A stretch of DNA of 63,971 bases, the filler included, from Guillardia theta CCMP2712 (lineage: Eukaryota > Protista > Cryptophyta), in the NCBI RefSeq assembly GCF_000315625.1. It is 5 parts of 5 records of this genome, joined end to end, with 100 filler letters (N's around TTAATTAATTAA, not from the genome) between each part and the next. Parts side by side here need not be neighbours in the genome. Positions count along the whole stretch, not along the records: positions 14,345 to 42,032 come from NW_005434563.1; 4 more parts are not named here. One strand, given 5' to 3'. Of this stretch, positions 17,806-29,671 are shown one piece after another. The position numbers and the translations under genes are program-made. Below the pieces are notes generated by a model. That model did no database searches. It had not been told where the DNA came from and worked only from the letters and a program-made list of their open reading frames with translations. The stretch's first letter is position 1, and each line of letters begins with the position of its first letter.

Positions 17806-18987
17806 CTACCAAAATTTGCTTACCTCCTGCTCGCAGAACCAAAGCGCCGTGTTGCGGTGACTCTTGTTCTGGTACAACCATCCTAGAGGGGAGTAAGGAG
17901 CTTGCATCTCCAGGAGCGCGTCTGGAGACGCGATGTTCTCCGACATCTCAGCCGGATCTCCTGGCAGAACCGGATGACTGTCGCTCCCTGTCGACAACAG
18001 ACCCTCTTGCACGAATGCATATGTACAAAGTTTTCGAGCTGACGGCCTTTTAGTATAGGTGGGTTGCAAGCATTCGTCCAGGAAGCGTTGCGCGTCCTCG
18101 TTCAGATCCTTGGGGATCGCTGGCCTTGCAAACAATCGTTTCGCTCCCGATCCCAGGTCGGGAGCTTCTTCCGGAGGAACATCTTCCATGGTCAGAGCAC
18201 CTGTCAACATCTCCAAAACACAGCATCCCAAACTCCAAATGTCCGACTGTCGCGCAAACACTCCCTTGATAAAAACCTCTGGAGCAGAGTATCCCAACGT
18301 CCCCTCAAACGATTGCGATTGATGGGGAGCATACACTCGCACTTGACCGAAGTCAGATAGCTTCACCACACCCAAAGTCGTGACCAAGCAGGTACTGCAA
18401 GTGATGTTTCTGTGCACGATACAGTGCCTGTGCAGGTAGTCCAGACCAGATAGGATGTGCCGTGTGTATCTGGCTGTTAGACGGTCGCTGAGAGCCCCAA
18501 ACCGTGAGAGAATGCATGCAATACTTCCTCCATCGCAGAATTCCATCAACACACATAGTTTACCGTCTCGGACACACGATCCCTTGTACTGAACGATGTG
18601 GTTATGTCGTAGCAGCCTTAGGGTATTCATCTCTCGCATGAAGCGGTCAGTAGCCTTGGAATTTGCCGATGCGGCTTCTTGTCTGCAGGCCATGAGTTGG
18701 CCAGTAACATCATCGATAGCAACATAGACAACTCCGCTACCCCCGTATTTCAGAGTTTTGTTGCCTCGATGCCAGCTGGTGAAGCTTTCATTCCTGTTCT
18801 CAAAGGCTGTCCTCTCAATCTGTTTTTGCTCTGCGAGGACAACAGGTGTCAACTCCCTCCTCTCTTCATCGGTGAAGTAGTTGTCATCCAGACTGTCCCA
18901 GCTCCCCAGTTCTCGGAGATTTCCTGAGCTCCCACTCGAATGTATGGGAGACGGAGATTCTCTGGACACATGCATTGATGTGACCAC
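17806..18987 (-). CDS. STE11/MAP3K-like Ser/Thr kinase-domain protein, probable pseudokinase. Further upstream exons likely reach ~19.8 kb.
   Basis: Motifs: YGGSGVVY, LRHNHIVQYKG, MEFCDGGSI, YTRHILSGLDYLH..CIVHRNI, KLSDFG, GTLGYSAPEV, SDIWSLGC.VLEMLTG, KRPSARKL. Confidence 0.8.
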   Translation of the reverse strand: MVTSMHVSRESPSPIHSSGSSGNLRELGSWDSLDDNYFTDEERRELTPVVLAEQKQIERTAFENRNESFTSWHRGNKTLKYGGSGVVYVAIDDVTGQLMACRQEAASANSKATDRFMREMNTLRLLRHNHIVQYKGSCVRDGKLCVLMEFCDGGSIACILSRFGALSDRLTARYTRHILSGLDYLHRHCIVHRNITCSTCLVTTLGVVKLSDFGQVRVYAPHQSQSFEGTLGYSAPEVFIKGVFARQSDIWSLGCCVLEMLTGALTMEDVPPEEAPDLGSGAKRLFARPAIPKDLNEDAQRFLDECLQPTYTKRPSARKLCTYAFVQEGLLSTGSDSHPVLPGDPAEMSENIASPDALLEMQAPYSPLGWLYQNKSHRNTALWFCEQEVSKFW

Positions 18988-21363
18988 AGCAAAGTCAAGG
19001 TTTACAGCATTCTTGTTTCATCTGCAAAGATAGAAGTTCACAAACATTCGTTGCAGGCTTGATACTGAAACATGCGGGCCTGAGCCCTGGATTGTATCAA
19101 TGAAGTTGCTGCGTTGCTTGACACGAATTTCAGGCGAGGGTGTCTCCCCGAGTCCCCAGACTCGAAGTGCAGCTTGACCAAACTGACAAAATATTTCACG
19201 ACTGTGGAATCGGGGTATTCGTGATGGTGGTCAAAGCTTCTATGACTATCAGCAGGACATATCGGTACCCTGACGAAACCATGGTGTTAGCATTCAAATG
19301 CAAGAAAACCAAATACAACTTGTATGAACAACTATCTGACATAAACACTGTGTTTAACTGAATAAGTATATATAAATTCGACTGGTGAAGCGTCAAGAGT
19401 AACTTATCACATGCAGAAGGAGATAGTTTGAGTATAGCGTGCACAATAAAACTGCCATGTGGTACAAAACAAGTTTGCAAAGAACGTATGAAGAAGTAGC
19501 TTTCTGAAGCTAGTTAATTGGTCTACAACGATCATCCTTTTCGATCAGTTTCCTCCTGGACTGCAACCAAAATGCATGAAATATCTATATCATCGCTCAT
19601 GCACACAATGACCCCTGGTGTTGCTACACCTAGCGAGTAGTCCTGCTCCTGCCTGTCATCCTTCCCAAAAGTCCCTGTAACATTCGGCTGCGCTAAGAGG
19701 TTTTAGGCCGAGTTAACAGCATAACAGATAGCTGGTGGAACCAGCAGAAGCGTGGGAAGTTGTTCAAACGCCCAGCCAGTGCGAATGCCTACATTTGACT
19801 GGGGAAAGCATGCGGTTCATGAGTTGTAAACAGACGCAGTTTTGGAGGAAGCAAGCACAGAATAGCGGGGAAGGCATGCTGTGTTATAGTGGAGGATAGG
19901 AGGAGGCGAGAGGACGACGAGGCCCTCACGGCATGGTAGTGCCTTGCAACAGCGCCCGACATGCGGCAGGGAGAGGACGATCGTCTGAGGAAACATGAGG
20001 GGTAGTCTGTCTATGAAAAAGGGGGTAGGGGTACATTGTATTATAGAGAATTTGGGGGTTGTTTGAGTTACGTCGAGGTTTGGTGGGTGGGGTGGTCTAC
20101 GCTGAGGTCAAAATGCTATAAAGGGTGGGTAGTGACGGCACTTTTCCTTTCACTGCATGGGTGGTACAGGTATTGTTGCTGAAGGTGCTCGAGAAAGAGG
20201 GGTAGGGGTGGGTATTTCAAGTGAGGCATTGTGAGGCTGCAGGGCTGGAAGGGTGGGGTGGTCAAGAAGAGGGGTATAACAAAACAACAATGTTTCAGAA
20301 GCAAGAAGGCGGTGAATGCCATTTGGGGGTGGGGGTCGTTGGGGAAAAGGGGTCCCCAAGACAACTGGGGGGTACATGGGAGGTGGGGGTAGTGTTCAAC
20401 CGGTAGTCCTAATTTCTTTCCGCAAATCTCAAGGTTGAAGGGGAAGGTCACGGGGACAGGAGGGGTAGTAATGACAGATAGTTTCAAATCGGATGGATTG
20501 AAGGAAAGAGTACCGGTAGTGGGTGAAAACTGGCGATCCTGAGAGAGAAAAAGACTGGAGCATGGAAGGATGTCTCAATTTTAATATAAACTTTATCGAG
20601 AAATGCTCCACTATAGAGCAAGATAAATGGGAGTCTGAAAATGGTATTAACGTGTCTCGCTGTGCCGGGGGGGTACTGTGCCGGGGAGATGGAACCCGGG
20701 GCCGGTGGTACTACCGACCCCGACCCTTTGTATTAAACAACCACTACCCACCCCATTTCCCAAGGGATCAGAGGTATAACTTCAAGGACCCCAACCCCGT
20801 CATGCTCTGACGACAGGTTTGGTGTGTTATACGTACTTAGTAACATGGTGGGTAAATTATAGAGACTGGGGTAGGGTGGTAAAGACTGATAAGGGCAGAA
20901 AGAATTAAGCCCGAACTGTGTATTTCTACTTTTGCTGTCCCTTTCCATTCTTGACCGTGGATATCGAAACTAGCTCTTTTCGATTTGTTTTTCTTTTGAA
21001 CCCTTCGTCGGCACGTCAACCTTGACTGCGACTCCCATCCGAAACCACCCCCACCCCCTCTTCCTCACCTTCCCCCACCGGATGGTTTATCACAGTCACG
21101 AGGTCGATGGGTGTTTATAAATACTTTTGTATTTAAAACTCAATAACTGCATTGCTTTTAGCTCCTCGTGACTGACCCCGTTGATCCCCGTTGTACGACC
21201 GGTGTGGGTTTACTGTAACGGTCGTAACGTAAAACTCCTTCCGGCATGTCCTCTTGCGAGGTCTTGAGATGTAACGCTTTGTAACTGCAACAGCCGGGCC
21301 GGGCCCGGCTTGCCGGATACACCTGGGCCGAATTTTACTGAGAGAACTTTGTCCTGCTTGCCG

Positions 21364-22695
21364 ATGGCGATGGCGATGCGGCTATTGGCGGCCATGGCCG
21401 TCATGCTGTGCATGAAGGAGATGAGGGCAGATGAGAAGAGGAGTGAGGATCAGCTCTCAGACTCCACCCATACCTCACCTCCTTCCTCCACCATCGCTTC
21501 CTTAAGCACCTTCCTGACCTCTCGTCGGATGTTCCAGGACAGCGCTCTGCTGTGGGCGGCGGCTGATGGACAGTGTGAGGAGAGCGAGGCCGGGGCAGAG
21601 GAGCAGCATGACGACGATCAGAATATGATGAAGGACGTGTGGTGGGATCTAACACTGGTTGAGAGCTCCTTCTCGTCATGCCGGCAGCAGGCATGGATCA
21701 ACGACACGCAGCGCTTCAAAGTCGGAAGGCACGAGGAATTCTCCGTCTCGAGGCTGTCGTGCAGAGGGAGCGATCAGTTTGAACCGCCGGAGGACTCCAT
21801 GAGATTGATCGTCCTGGTCGACTACGAGCTCGGCACAGTAGACTCGTGGCGCCATGCTGACCTGCTCGCAGCATGGCTAGTGGAGCCAAGGGTCGTGTGT
21901 CCGTCTTGCTACGAGTATGTCAAGAACAACCGGCACAAGTTCGACCTGATCTTAAGTCACGAGGACGATTTTGTCGTGCAATCAGGAGAGAAGGGGATGT
22001 TTGTGAACGCGGCCGTGCCCTCCATCGACCCATCGCTGTTCCTCCCCGACAGTTTCTTCCGAGACCCCTCGGACGCGTCTGAGTTGATGGGGACGAAGAG
22101 CAGGCTGGTTTCAGCCATCGTCAGCTCCAAGAGGTCTACGACAGGACAGCGACTCCGACACGACGTCCTGGCGTCGCTAGGAGGGAAGCTAGGTGATATC
22201 TACGGCGCCGGGCACAGGCCCCTCCCGGAGAAGCACTCTGCGATTGGTCCCTACCTGTTCCACTTGGTGATCGAGAACAACAGGAGGGAGTGCTACTTCA
22301 CTGAGAAGCTTCTCGACTGCCTCGTCCTCGGGACCGTCCCGCTCTACTGGGGGTGCGAGAGGATCGGGGACGTCTTCGACGAGTCGGGTCTGCTCTCCTT
22401 CCAGACGGTGGAGGAGCTCGCCCAGCTGCTGGACAACCTGAGCCCTGAGCTGTACGCCGAGCTGTATCCTTCCGTCCGGCGGAACTTCCTGCTGGCCACC
22501 AGGGCATACACGGGAATGAGCCCGATGCATCAGCTATGGCGGTCCAAGGGGAGGAGGATGTCGATGGATCTTCCCCGTGTGTCCGTCGTCAGCCCAGCCA
22601 ACGACTCCTCCTCCCCGGTCCGCGGAGCCCTCGAGCTGGACTTCGCCGTCAAGGGCTCTTCCATCCTCAGGCTCGGTGCGGCTGAGGAGATGTGA
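21364..22695 (+). CDS. Glycosyltransferase family 10 (alpha-1,3-fucosyltransferase-like) with N-terminal signal/anchor. Short 3' exons probably continue to ~23.1 kb.
   Basis: GT10 signature YLFHLVIENNRRECYFTEKLLDCLVLGTVPLYWG, plus the hydrophobic N-terminus MAMAMRLLAAMAVMLC. Confidence 0.8.
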   Translation: MAMAMRLLAAMAVMLCMKEMRADEKRSEDQLSDSTHTSPPSSTIASLSTFLTSRRMFQDSALLWAAADGQCEESEAGAEEQHDDDQNMMKDVWWDLTLVESSFSSCRQQAWINDTQRFKVGRHEEFSVSRLSCRGSDQFEPPEDSMRLIVLVDYELGTVDSWRHADLLAAWLVEPRVVCPSCYEYVKNNRHKFDLILSHEDDFVVQSGEKGMFVNAAVPSIDPSLFLPDSFFRDPSDASELMGTKSRLVSAIVSSKRSTTGQRLRHDVLASLGGKLGDIYGAGHRPLPEKHSAIGPYLFHLVIENNRRECYFTEKLLDCLVLGTVPLYWGCERIGDVFDESGLLSFQTVEELAQLLDNLSPELYAELYPSVRRNFLLATRAYTGMSPMHQLWRSKGRRMSMDLPRVSVVSPANDSSSPVRGALELDFAVKGSSILRLGAAEEM

Positions 22696-25180: not shown

Positions 25181-26072
25181 CGTTAGAAGAAGAAAGAACT
25201 TAAACATTCTTTTCTGGGTATCATCATTCCCAACTTTCAAGCAGAAGGGAAGGAGTAGAAATGTTGAATTGTTTCACATCAGCACGAAGTCTGATCTATT
25301 CAAGCCTGATCTGCACACCCAATAGATCCTTCATCAACATTCTCGAATCATCTTGTGCCCTACTCCATCATCTCATCAACTACGTCGTTTCCTCAACAGT
25401 TTTTATCGTAAACAGTTCTTCCTTACAGCAATTTCGGAGGGCTCTTGGCCCTCCGAGGCTACTTGCGCCCCTCCCGGTCCTCTTCTACCATTCCAGCTCC
25501 TTCTGACAGTCCTCCTGCTCTTACTGCTCCTCCTCCTCCTCCTGTTTCTCCTTCTCCTCATGTTTCTGCTGCTTCTCCTCCTCCTCGCCTTCCTATCATG
25601 CCCAACTTCCGATAACCAAAGACCTACAATTCGGACCCGAGCCTAGTTGACCTACCCCCACCCTACCGTGACTGCGATGAAGATCATTACCCTACCCCCT
25701 GTTTCATTACTCATAGAGTGCGTCGGAAACCCCGGCCGTCCCTACCCCACCCTATGTGTATCCTTAACATTTTCCGCACCCCTCGACTTGTTGAGCCTTT
25801 TCATCACCCCTTCTACTACGCCCAACCACCCCTCATTCCCTCAGGAACCCCCTAAGGTAACCCCCGGCACAAACCCATTGCGCCGATGAACTGTTACTAC
25901 CGGTGGAGGTACGAATAGAACAGGCAGGGAAAAGCACCGGTGATACAAGGACCTACTGCCACCCTACCCCTCAGGTGATACGGCGGCTGCTAATGAGAGA
26001 CTTGATAATAGATAAACGCCACGAATCTATCTACCACGGGTACTCTCCCTCATGATGTGACGGAATATGTGA

Positions 26073-26175
26073 ATACCCTTCTGAACGACGAACTAAGTTT
26101 TCGCACAGAACTGCCGTCGTATGATTGAGAGCCGCGACTCTCCGTCATACAACGGCAGTTGTTTTTTTTTGCCAA
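26073..26175 (-). ncRNA. Candidate Fanzor omegaRNA: scaffold hairpin + element right end + ~20-nt flank-derived guide
   Basis: The 52-nt hairpin at 26109-26160 reads AACUGCCGUUGUAUGA-CG-GAGAG-UCGCGG-CUCUC-AA-UCAUACGACGGCAGUU on the minus strand, with G-U pairs on this strand. It lies ~215 nt after the stop and 16 nt before the CUUAG end. The 5' extent is unknown and could reach the stop codon. Confidence 0.6.
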
Positions 26176-28612
26176 ATTGTCTTCGGATGTTGTTGGAGCC
26201 TTACATGAATCCTACCAAATGATGCCAGTCAGTCACTTCAATGATCACATGTCGTAAACATCGGATCATAATGGAGGCAGGCACCGGGCAGGCAGGCAGG
26301 CAGGGAATTAGGCATCGAGTCCCGAGGGACGCAGTCTGGGTAGGGAGGGGGCGACAACAATCATTGAATTCACCTCAGGGGCGACGTAGGTGATTCGGTC
26401 TTTCAGGAAACACATTGAAACAAGTGAGTATATTCAGTGCAGCATTCAAGTCCCTGGATTTGATCGGCTTTCCTTTACAGCTGTCACGATAACAGTTAGA
26501 TGAAAAGGTGAATTACAGGAGTATACAAAACTTGACATTACCTCGATGATCTGCAAAATTTCAATCCTCGTACTTCACTTTTCCTTGTTTTCAACCTACA
26601 GGTCTCGTCTGGTTCTTTCCCTGTATTTTCAATCCGTCGAAGCACATCGAGCTCAGAACCACAATCGTTACAGCACTTGGTAGTACGGTATTCGTCAACA
26701 TCTACGACTCTGTAGTGATTCTCGAATCTTCTTCTTATCCACCTGACCGGTACAGGCCTTTCTCCTCGACGTCCTGTAGACGGGAACCTTGCATTTCCAT
26801 ATGCGATAACAGGTTCTATTTCTCCCTTTCCTTTCATTGTACGGATAAACCTGTCGACTGACTTTCGTTTCGAAATGTAGATGTCGAATTTCATCCTGGC
26901 GTATTTTCGCTTTGAATAATGCGAAGTTAACTCCTCCCAATGACTTGTAACTGCAAGAAGATAGTCTTCGAATCTTGATAGACTGCCGCCAGACTTACTC
27001 GAGAACCCCTTGAGATATTGCAATGTCGATTGAATATCTTGATCCCACGTCTTTCTTTTCTTTTTATTGCGATTCAGATGTGACTCGTGATAATATTGTT
27101 TTCTCGAAAACTGAAATCTTTTTCTGATTATTTGTTGATCATCTCTGAATTGTTCGACGGCCGATATAATGACGCTCCTCCCAGGGTCGATCGCAATTAC
27201 CCTTGGGCAATTTTTACATTCTTCGATCTCTCTTTGGTATTCTGAATTTTCATGTAATACTTTGTATGATATTGATATCTTCTTCGCCGATTTCCGTTCA
27301 GCCCTTTTTCTATCGGCAAGCCATTTGGTAGTGCGCAATGAAGGTTCCTGTTCGAGTCCATCGATTGTTTTGACAATTAACGTGAATCGAAAACAAACCG
27401 ATACACCGTCTGTCGTGATACTTGTAATCTCCTCTCTCTGATCTCTGAACAGATTCGAACAGTCGAAAATCCTTCTGAAATTCTTAGAGTTCTCCAAAGT
27501 TTGATCTATTCTCATGAACGATTTTTTATCTTCTCCCGGTTTCAAACTGTTCGCTTCTTTCAAAATGTAATACATCACATCATTATCGATTGTTAGATGT
27601 TTTCTGCCGAATTTCGACATTGGTGCTGCCTTGAATGTTTTTTTCGAGAGACCACGATCTTCGAAGAACTTCAACATGAACATGTGTGTCTCGATTATCT
27701 CAAACAGATTTTTCTGCAACCTATGATCAAATTTGTCATATTTGAAACTAAAAAGATCTTCGTCCCCCGATAATCCAATTAGTTGTTTCATATGGTCGAT
27801 GAAGGTTCCTATCTGCTGTGAATTATTCCTGTTAAACACTTCTGTCTTCAACTCGTAATCTTTCCTTTGAAACAATACATTCTTCACGTCTTCGATTTCT
27901 TGCTGATGGTTAATATGTAACTCTCCTTTGCAGAATTCGGCAATGAACTTTTCCAATCGGTTTGTAAAATTTGCTTTCAGGTCTTGGTAGAAATTCGTTC
28001 CATATTGATTTGCAGCGAATACAATAGCTTGCGAGTCTCCTCGAATTCTACATAAATCAACGAAAAGATGTCTTTTCTCTGACCAGAAACGTTGTAGAGT
28101 TGGATACTTGTTATCTGTACGGCTATGTTGTTCCATTCCAAGTGTAAAAACATTCCAGAAAAAGGTCGATTTGGCTCTCTTGATTTCATCTACTACATAT
28201 CGTAAATTCCCTGTATCCCTGCCCCATATCAGAAAACAGTTGAATATCATACTGCCTCTTGATGTGATCTGACTGATATGTAATACCCATCTGTCGATCA
28301 CGTCTAAAATCGATCTGTTCTCTACCTTGAGTCTCGAGTATAACCCACATTTGACGACTCTCGTGAATGGTTTTGAATAACTTATTTCTTGACCGTTGTC
28401 TGAATCATCTGTAATTCGTTTTCTCTTCCTCGGCATGTTATAGTATGTTAGTCTGGCGAAACCATGTTAGATAGCAGGTAGTCGCTACATTTTTTTCATT
28501 ACCATCGTTTCAGTGTATTGTCGGACCGCAAACTCTGTAATGGCGGGAAGATGAAACGAGAGCCACAAACTTTCCGTCGGAGGCGGGAAGTTTTTTTTTT
28601 TTTCTTTTTTAA
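26093..28612 (-). mobile_element. Non-autonomous Fanzor-carrying element without TIRs; ends inferred
   Basis: A low-GC island interrupts a C-rich intergenic tract that resumes on both sides. The minus-strand junctions are gggtCTTAA-aaaag (left) and aaaaCTTAG-ttcg (right). Both ends have subterminal hairpins, and there is no transposase gene. Confidence 0.6.
26375..28436 (-). CDS. Fanzor: Fanzor RNA-guided endonuclease (TnpB/Cas12 superfamily), 666 aa; complement(join(26375..26480,26542..28436))
   Basis: RuvC-I is VIAIDPGR. RuvC-II is rearranged: IAYGNARF has Gly at the canonical Glu site, with an alternative Glu in VDVDEYRTTK. Zn finger CNDC...C(RSSS)C. RuvC-III SRDLNAALNI lies in exon 2. 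N-terminal basic NLS-like MPRKRKR. The intron reads GTAATG..CTAAC..CAG. Confidence 0.93.
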
Positions 28613-29671
28613 GACCCTCATACAGCCCCATTGGATGGGTGATTGAAACCTATCAATGACCCCTGTCATGCTGGTCCATGACTCCTTCGGGAGTCCTTTT
28701 GTCGATTAAAGGATAAACACACTACCCCCACCCCATGAATACGAACTTCGGAAGATCTTCCGAATGTCACTGACCACCCCAGGGTACTCAAAGCACCACC
28801 CACTGCACATTCCCCCGGACTCCGGGATTTCGAGTGTGCCAGGCTGACTTGTTCCACCCCCTTCATTCCCCCAATGACAGTGGAAAGGACCAGGGTGGGT
28901 CATACTCAAAGGCTCGGACTCGGCCGGGGGACAACCGCGGGGAACCGGGTATTACCCATCTCCCCCGAGAGTACCCCTCCATTTCATAATTGATCTGCCT
29001 ACAACAGCAGGGTACTTGACCTAAACTCCGCTCGCACCCTCCCTCGGCTCGGAGTATCGGCACCCCACTTTACGTGACCACCCCTTTACCGTACCAGGTA
29101 GTCACCGTCGTCCCACCGGTCGCAGCCCCAGATACTGAGAGGGTACTAGCCTGACCCCCGGCCCCTCTGAGTAGCCGGGTTCAATGGCTTCTACCGTGAC
29201 GGTACCCTGCGATTTTACTCAAAGGTCGTAGCCTGTACCGTAGTACCGTGCCACGAGTCCGATCAGGGCCCCTACCCCCATTTTCAGTCAGATACACTGT
29301 CATCGGCGTGGGTACTACCCCATGGGTACTTTTTCAGGCAAGCCCCCCACAAAAGTAAACACTGAACGACTTCAACGGTTTTCATCTTACTGTTAACAGT
29401 TAATGGTTTTAAGTCTTAAAAACTTCAAATCCGAACGACCGGTCACTAAGCGCCGCCCGACCCCCCGGCGCCCCCCGGCGAACTAAGCGGCCCCGGTCAG
29501 TGCCGGGCCCGCCGCACCGCCCGGCGGCCGGGCTGCTCAGAACTTGAACGCCGAGGGGGGCCGGAAAATGATGGCAAAAGTTGCCGCAGCCTGGCGGTTT
29601 GACTGGCCACCGGGCCCTGTTAACTCAAAGTTAAGCCACCGGAGTTGAAGTTCTGACCGTCCGATATAACT

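Follow-up and report, generated by a model that had tools for sequence, protein, structure and literature searches.

The window analysed here, a stretch of 63,971 nucleotides (nt, filler included) from the cryptophyte Guillardia theta CCMP2712, contains a mobile element of low guanine-plus-cytosine (GC) content with a Fanzor-like gene on its minus strand, and the question raised by this locus is whether the gene is a truncated copy or one that splicing completes. Read without interruption, the open reading frame (ORF) beginning with ATG (28436..26538, minus strand) encodes 632 amino acids (aa), ends in FCRSSR and lacks the third RuvC motif. The original prediction, made from the DNA sequence, held that a 61-nt spliceosomal intron hides this motif, that the intron splits the second zinc-finger Cys pair and was gained in the host lineage, and that surveys based on ORFs would score the copy as truncated. 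We consider it highly probable that a low-GC mobile element here carries a Fanzor1-type gene with two spliceosomal introns, and that splicing turns this gene into one for a complete nuclease.

Gene model and homology across the intron 1 junction

On the gene strand, the sequence past the ORF reads TCGAG/GTAATG...TCTAACTGTTATCGTGACAG/CTGTAAAGG. The donor, TCGAG/GTAATG, has its GT at 26541-26540, which makes 26541 the first intron base, and the acceptor, GTGACAG/C, has its AG at 26482-26481, which makes 26481 the last. The 61 nt between these sites interrupt codon 632 in phase 2 and include the in-frame TAA (26540-26538) that terminates the naive ORF. With its GT..AG ends and a branch-like motif close to its 3′ end (AG/GTAATG...CTAAC...GACAG/C), the segment has the appearance of a U2-type intron, in which CTAAC probably acts as the branch site. 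Joining 26542 to 26480 results in a coding sequence (CDS) of 2001 nt and a predicted product of 666 aa, whose C-terminal sequence includes CRSS/SCKGKPIKSRDLNAALNIL...RRP, ...FCRSSSCKGKPIKSRDLNAALNILTCFNVFPERPNHLRRP and ...VRGLKFCRSSSCKGKPIKSRDLNAALNILTCFNVFPERPNHLRRP, each of these excerpts being followed by the stop (Table 1).

The original prediction had placed the 61-nt intron exactly, with the correct peptide and the correct end of the 632-aa ORF, and intron 1 does separate the two halves of the second zinc-finger Cys pair (C628 and C633). The ORF lacks RuvC-III as had been stated, and removal of the 61-nt GT..AG segment brings back C633 and RD.NAA.NI, both of which are invariant in relatives. 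The 26542/26480 joint keeps RDLNAALNI in frame; loss of frame at this motif had been named as an outcome that would count against the intron.

Two other explanations for the interruption were rejected. Sequencing or assembly error was set aside because the copies at L001 and L002, which are independent metagenome assemblies, are identical to the window in intron 1, exon 2 and intron 2. A self-splicing group I or group II intron, as found in IStrons, was set aside because intron 1 is only 61 nt long, folds with a z of +0.5 and has no Rfam match.

We assessed the junction by homology using a hidden Markov model (HMM) built from 12 uninterrupted relatives, against which all frame-keeping GT..AG removals with donors in 26450-26750 (266 candidates) were scored. 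Removal of intron 1 ranked at the top with 345.9 bits, compared with 306.7 bits for the unspliced sequence (+39 bits), while the runner-up candidates reached 337 and 335 bits. Since intron 1 comes first among 266 GT..AG pairs against a model of uninterrupted relatives, its prediction from sequence is beyond chance. Pairwise comparisons agree with this: a blastp alignment between the spliced protein and the spliced L005 protein crosses the junction (9e-54; ...VRGLRRCDSTGC--RMFLGRDLNAALNILECY), the uninterrupted homolog P0003 is likewise colinear, and alignments with relatives on virus contigs extend to aa 665 (L028, 5.6e-70; L029, 7e-67). The relatives are continuous through this region, reading VRGLRWCxSTxC..F.NRDxNAAxNIL...RP.SL, and in the C-terminal alignment (A2) C, RD, NAA, NI and RP are invariant. 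The end of the Pfam TNB model (PF07282, Cas12f1-like) corresponds to the Cys pair followed by RD.NAA.NI; the C-terminus of P0003 matches this model with 28.7 bits, above threshold, over positions 15-60, and the second exon of L005 with 22.2 bits over positions 30-60.

The Fanzor identity that had been proposed for the gene was borne out by profile searches. In a phmmer search, the ORF matched SpuFz1 of Spizellomyces punctatus (8GKH) with an E-value of 9.7e-07 over aa 375-604. Profile A1, which comprises the ORF and three database homologs (four family members), reached SpuFz1 at 1.5e-14 and GtFz1 of Guillardia theta (9CER) at 1.3e-6, with no stronger match to a non-Fanzor protein. An NCBIfam scan of the window ORF returned nothing, and neither did a search of P0003 alone against solved structures. 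By homology, the gene product is a Fanzor1-type TnpB-like nuclease. Splicing of intron 1 would yield a product with a nuclear localization signal (NLS)-like basic N-terminal stretch, D417, a relocated Glu582, a CxxC...Cx4C zinc finger and D642, and the predicted 666-aa protein thereby carries the complete D-E-D set (D417, E582 and D642); the rearranged RuvC-II was assigned by motif rather than by structure. The motifs agree with those published for Fanzors, in which Gly or Pro stands in place of the RuvC-II Glu, another Glu is found ~45 residues downstream, an NLS has been acquired and introns have been captured (PMC10530073). We infer that the 666-aa protein would be an active ωRNA-guided DNA endonuclease.

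Table 1. Features of the Fanzor locus and its surroundings, in window positions (joints are given in plus-strand order).
Feature	Position	Strand	Description
Mobile element bearing the Fanzor gene	26006..28716	-	2711 bp, sharp ends
Coding exon 1	26542..28436	-	aa 1-631 plus 2 nt
Spliceosomal intron 1	26481..26541	-	61 nt, GTAATG...CTAAC...GACAG, phase 2, 34% GC
CTAAC branch-site-like motif	26495..26499	-	read from sequence; putative branch A 26496, 15 nt before 3′ splice site
Coding exon 2	26375..26480	-	aa 632-666 plus stop TGA 26377-26375; aligns with P0003, L005 and virus-contig relatives
Sense intron 2	26212..26373	-	162 nt, GTGAAT...TGGTAG; joint 26210->26373 (cut +1, CT..AC), X1 and X2 contigs
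Terminal exon and element 3′ end	26006..26211	-	206 nt; contigs cover 26006-26213, running into flank
Basic N-terminal stretch PRKRKR	aa 2-7	-	NLS-like
RuvC-I AIDPGR, D417	27188-27186	-	invariant in A1; aligns with VIDPNK of SpuFz1
AYG545-547 (canonical RuvC-II Glu lost)	exon 1	-	G547 invariant in A1
Alternative Glu582 in VDEYR	26693-26691	-	invariant in A1; 35 residues past AYG; aligns with DEY of SpuFz1
First Cys pair, CCNDC588-592	exon 1	-	C588/C591 or C589/C592
Second Cys pair, C628-RSSS-C633 (C-x4-C)	C633 = 26479-26477, exon 2	-	complete only once spliced
RuvC-III SRDLNAALNI, D642	26452-26450, exon 2	-	invariant in A2 and at least 15 relatives; absent from 632-aa ORF
Antisense intron	26424..26480	+	57 nt, GTGAGT...TTTACAG; joint 26423->26481, X1 and X3 contigs
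Antisense intron in coding region	26813..26880	+	68 nt, GTTCTA...ATGTAG; joint 26810->26879 (cut +2), X1 and X2 contigs
Antisense intron	26947..27184	+	238 nt, GTAACT...TCCCAG; joint 26946->27185, one contig of X1, one read of X15
Antisense intron	27237..27301	+	65 nt, GTATTC...GTTCAG; joint 27235->27301 (cut +1), one X2 contig
Protein kinase domain ORF	17806-18987	-	E 2.6e-48; host-type, ~55% GC flank
GT10 fucosyltransferase C-terminal domain ORF	21310-22695	+	E 1.5e-07; host-type, ~55% GC flank

A word search of proteins found only four, including P0001, which is the 632-aa ORF itself (ENA metagenomes); the gene's sole database entry is thus the truncated form, just as had been expected of ORF-based surveys. 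Pattern scans added further loci, 21 of them in metagenomes and 7 on viral contigs. The best matches are on giant-virus contigs (L028-L032 from IMG/VR, 60-340 kb, one of them a GVMAG), which share 28-30% identity over aa 26-665 and are uninterrupted at the intron 1 site. In L005, the homolog P0002 has a 71-nt GT..AG intron (1855-1925) located after TSK and before the first CxxC, and the database version of P0002 (597 aa) was translated through this intron into a junk C-terminus. Because the viral relatives are uninterrupted and the L005 intron lies elsewhere, the sequence comparison supports a lineage-specific gain of the codon-632 intron, the nearest known kin being intron-free and viral. A comparison of intron position across paralogs had been suggested together with the proposal of intron gain, and the comparison with homologs agrees both with that proposal and with published work on Fanzors (PMC10530073). 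Intron 1 may have been gained once the gene had been transferred from a giant-virus-like source that lacked introns.

A different kind of interruption was observed in the corresponding protein region at L003:1971-2031 (identical in L004), where the homolog P0004 is split by a frame-shifting segment of 61 nt between VRGL and KWCPKPSC. This segment is not bounded by GT..AG and folds into two adjacent perfect 13-bp hairpins (z -9.0), and neither L003 nor L004 contains any GT..AG intron that gives the expected ...VRGL-KWCPKPSC join. A palindromic insertion is one possible origin, an intervening sequence of a non-spliceosomal type another.

Spliced transcripts in both orientations

Four sequencing runs were aligned to positions 25700-29000, three of them as assembled contigs (X1, X2 and X3) and one as raw reads (X15, ~6% of the run). 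The joint 26480->26542, which skips the 61 nt of intron 1 and has CT..AC ends on the plus strand (GT..AG on the gene strand), was present in X1 and X3, two runs from different studies. In X1 it is carried by two contigs with a summed depth of 17.5 and in X3 by one contig with a depth of 10.9, the shorter side of the alignment measuring 39 nt. The exact joint that the original prediction had proposed to look for in RNA is therefore found in contigs of both runs. One of the junction contigs differs from the window at seven positions in exon 2, retains RDLNAALNI and has a synonymous change at A645; because of these seven differences, this contig stems from a diverged paralog, and the splice is used in at least two copy lineages.

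Every joint found, sense or antisense (six of six), is bounded by GT..AG on one of the two strands. The word content of a 2.4-kb flank was 0.09-0.19 in every run provisionally labelled RNA ('RNA?'), compared with 0.45-0.98 in DNA-like runs. Since canonical joints were found throughout and flank content was low, we took the 'RNA?' runs as RNA, and the observations support the conclusion that they behave as transcriptomes. Three things are thus directly observed: the sequence features of the splice sites, homology that extends across the junction, and the joint itself in transcript contigs.

The element is also transcribed and spliced in the antisense orientation (Table 1). Owing to the palindrome CAG/CTG (26480/26481), the antisense intron at 26424-26480 and sense intron 1 have the same acceptor boundary. 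The joint 26810->26879 recurs in the raw RNA of X15, where 2 reads cross it and 8 loose ends stop at 26879, their consensus agreeing with the sequence that precedes 26811. In X3, contigs in records 19 and 20 span both borders of intron 1 unspliced; because the antisense RNA uses sense intron 1 as exon, these contigs are not readable as intron retention.

At the other end of the gene, the longest contig that X1 provides for the ORF, 1252 nt in length, stops precisely on the first base of the start codon (A, 28436), with zero depth upstream and no acceptor site at that position. This end may be a transcript start or the point at which a paralog diverges.

The mobile element, its 3′ end and a candidate guide RNA

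Within 26006..28716, and only there, the copies at L001 and L002 share 99.5-99.7% identity with the window, the flanks beyond these limits being different; an X1 contig passes 26006 into a further, unlike flank. The GC content of the element is 37-45%, compared with ~55% in its surroundings, and the ~99.5% identity among copies suggests that it is young. The interval probably represents a mobile element, non-autonomous and low in GC, within the nuclear genome of a eukaryote. Neither the element nor either intron has a second copy in the 27.7-kb piece of the window.

Comparison of the element ends revealed no terminal inverted repeats (TIRs), only short repeats at chance level, and no target-site duplication (TSD) was shared in the four contexts available (three different flanks on the 5′ side and three on the 3′ side). 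TTA is present at both ends, which is ambiguous, and an 11-nt likeness between the 5′ flanks of L001 and of the window is near chance (E 0.039). Assignment to Helitron2, Tc1-mariner or another TIR transposon was rejected, as neither a TIR, an asymmetric TIR with hairpin nor a TSD was found. The 3′ flanks of L001 (2925-3182) and L002 (2778-2922) are identical to each other while their 5′ flanks are unrelated. This pattern might stem from an assembly chimera caused by repeats, or from an insertion that is nested or composite. One in four words of the flank adjacent to the element occurs in a freshwater metagenome run. Two similar hairpins with T-runs on the plus strand (A-runs on the gene strand) lie near each element end, at 26109-26170 and 28569-28602.

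The stop codon of the 666-aa frame lies ~370 nt from the element end. Intron 2 begins 1 nt past this stop and is thus an intron of the 3′ untranslated region. Its GC content of 54% resembles that of the host, the element as a whole having ~40%, and a CTGC(C) microsatellite lies within it; an imperfect 14-nt inverted repeat near its ends (26232-26245 / 26360-26373) is at chance level. Once intron 2 is spliced, the normal stop is 1 nt upstream of the exon junction, and the stop used when intron 1 is retained is 164 nt upstream. A stop codon farther than 50-55 nt upstream of an exon junction favours nonsense-mediated decay. By this rule, and because of the 164-nt distance, transcripts retaining intron 1 are candidates for decay, and the predicted decay would weigh against a useful nuclease-dead retention product.

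The last 206 nt of the element fold with -70.8 kcal/mol (z -5.5, equalled by 0/200 shuffles) into four hairpins, the last of which finishes at the element boundary, and the motif at 26109-26170 forms a 26-bp stem within this region. By analogy with TnpB and Fanzor, this structured end is a candidate ωRNA scaffold, and the guide would be read from the flank beyond it; since the element copies are 99.5% identical, the fold comes without covariation. Rfam models gave nothing over 25500-29200 at E<=1, and comparison of the window 3′ region, spliced or unspliced, with the 3′ regions of relatives revealed no non-coding similarity. In L007, L011 and L029, nucleotide conservation reaches only 60-100 nt beyond the stop. 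This giant-virus layout is TnpB-like, with an ωRNA that would overlap the 3′ end of the ORF. The equivalent zone of the window copy holds both sense introns, and the folded element end adjoins the coding end only upon removal of the 162-nt intron. For these two reasons we considered whether splicing could be part of making or regulating the guide RNA, such that the mature ωRNA is spliced or splice choice divides the transcript between mRNA and guide, an idea that we regard as a long shot. Were it correct, the spliced antisense RNA, with the common CAG/CTG acceptor, could compete at this position.

Alternative explanations and relation to known systems

Several observations weigh against the proposed account. 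That the joint-bearing runs are RNA is a guess, and as they consist of assembled contigs, strand and level cannot be read from them. X15, the sole run recorded as RNA-seq, has no reads over 26366-26587, and its only splice is antisense. The expressed copies may differ from the window copy, given that the X1 contig exits into another flank and the window flanks have zero depth. On the unspliced ORF, the Pfam TNB model scored 14.8 bits against a threshold of 26.3 bits and aligned only at positions 15-39 of 60. No transposase was found at the element, which also lacks TIRs and TSDs, and neither ωRNA, nuclease activity nor protein has been observed for the window gene.

These points leave room for other explanations. 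The gene could be a truncated, decaying Fanzor copy in which the 61-nt skip reflects a variant at the DNA level: a deletion, or a paralog that lacks the intron or was retro-copied. The provisional RNA status of the runs, the presence of the joint in a diverged paralog and the existence of several copies are compatible with such a variant, but canonical GT..AG ends at all six joints would be unexpected for DNA deletions, the 'RNA?' runs contain 9-19% of the flank as against 45-98% in DNA-like runs, the intron is present in three DNA assemblies (window, L001 and L002), and an intronless DNA copy would itself derive from splicing. Decay also fits poorly with a frame and checked residues (D417, E582, D642 and the Cys pairs) that are all intact, and we judge this explanation to be extremely improbable. 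Retention of intron 1 could alternatively be the relevant state, with splicing a minor event and the 632-aa product a nuclease-dead, RNA-guided DNA binder. Bacteria are known to have nuclease-dead derivatives of TnpB with regulatory roles (PMC10705468), and the X3 contigs that cross both intron borders unspliced would be expected in this case. However, these contigs could equally come from the antisense RNA, which is exonic from 26481 onward; RD.NAA.NI and the Cys of exon 2 are maintained in both the window copy and the expressed diverged paralog; and the stop in the retained intron, located 164 nt before the intron-2 junction, would favour nonsense-mediated decay. We therefore regard a functional role for the retained form as very unlikely.

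A further possibility is that the element is mostly silenced or transcribed in antisense, through read-through from genes next to other insertion sites or from an internal antisense promoter, in which case sense mRNA would be too rare for protein to be made and the intact gene would mark a recent arrival. The ORF contains four antisense GT..AG joints, of which one is supported by genuine RNA-seq reads (X15), nearly all X15 reads have one orientation with their sole splice in antisense, and the 99.5% identity of the copies suggests youth. On the other side, sense joints for both introns were found in three runs of different studies, and the sense joint depths (17.5 and 10.9) equal or exceed, roughly, the antisense depths of 11.1 and 4.9. 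Predominant silencing or antisense transcription thus appears unlikely, if less so than the preceding alternatives, and it would be compatible with a real intron.

The favoured account, a spliced Fanzor1-type gene on a mobile element, provides a transcript-supported 666-aa gene model for a Fanzor1 lineage that is held in protein databases only as a truncated 632-aa ORF, and it would be a concrete example of intact eukaryotic Fanzors being under-counted when ORFs are called as in prokaryotes. The lineage connects a nuclear mobile element with intron-free relatives in giant viruses and may illustrate intron gain after transfer. The locus also appears suited to asking how a Fanzor transcribed by RNA polymerase II yields both mRNA and guide RNA: the relevant layout comprises an intron in the zinc-finger coding region, another directly at the stop, a structured element end and antisense RNA that is itself spliced, and sense and antisense splice sites are unusually crowded in the region expected to hold the guide RNA.

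Among characterized Fanzors, SpuFz1 (PDB 8GKH, 9CEU-9CEZ) and GtFz1 (9CER-9CET) have a WED/RuvC core homologous to that of the window protein and have in common with it the RuvC-I DPxx motif, the DEY-T(S/T)K-C..C segment and a C-terminal zinc finger followed by RuvC-III. The window protein differs in that its similarity to SpuFz1 is distant and its second Cys pair has the spacing C-x4-C. At the locus of GtFz1, Saito et al. reported neither inverted repeats nor a transposase (PMC10432273), and neither was found at the window locus. With CrFNuc of Chlamydomonas reinhardtii (Fanzor1c; Jiang et al. 2023, PMC10530073), the gene shares its status as a genomic Fanzor with spliceosomal introns in the CDS and a basic, NLS-like N-terminus. 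In contrast with CrFNuc, the window lineage is a different one, whose CDS has a single intron that falls within the zinc finger shortly ahead of RuvC-III, and a second intron abuts the stop, and the Helitron2 features were not found at the window element.

The giant-virus genes (L028-L032) have the same domain order and the same C-terminus, VRGL.WC.ST.C...RD.NAA.NI, but are single ORFs of ~590-610 aa with longer C-terminal tails, whereas the window copy has introns. The TnpB proteins of bacterial IS200/IS605 and IS607 elements share the split RuvC and zinc ribbon (TNB, PF07282), with the guide RNA expected at the element 3′ end; unlike them, the window gene is eukaryotic, has spliceosomal introns and a rearranged RuvC-II Glu, and is not accompanied by TnpA. 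Since intron capture by Fanzor genes has already been published (Jiang et al. 2023), the window gene is not a new kind of system.

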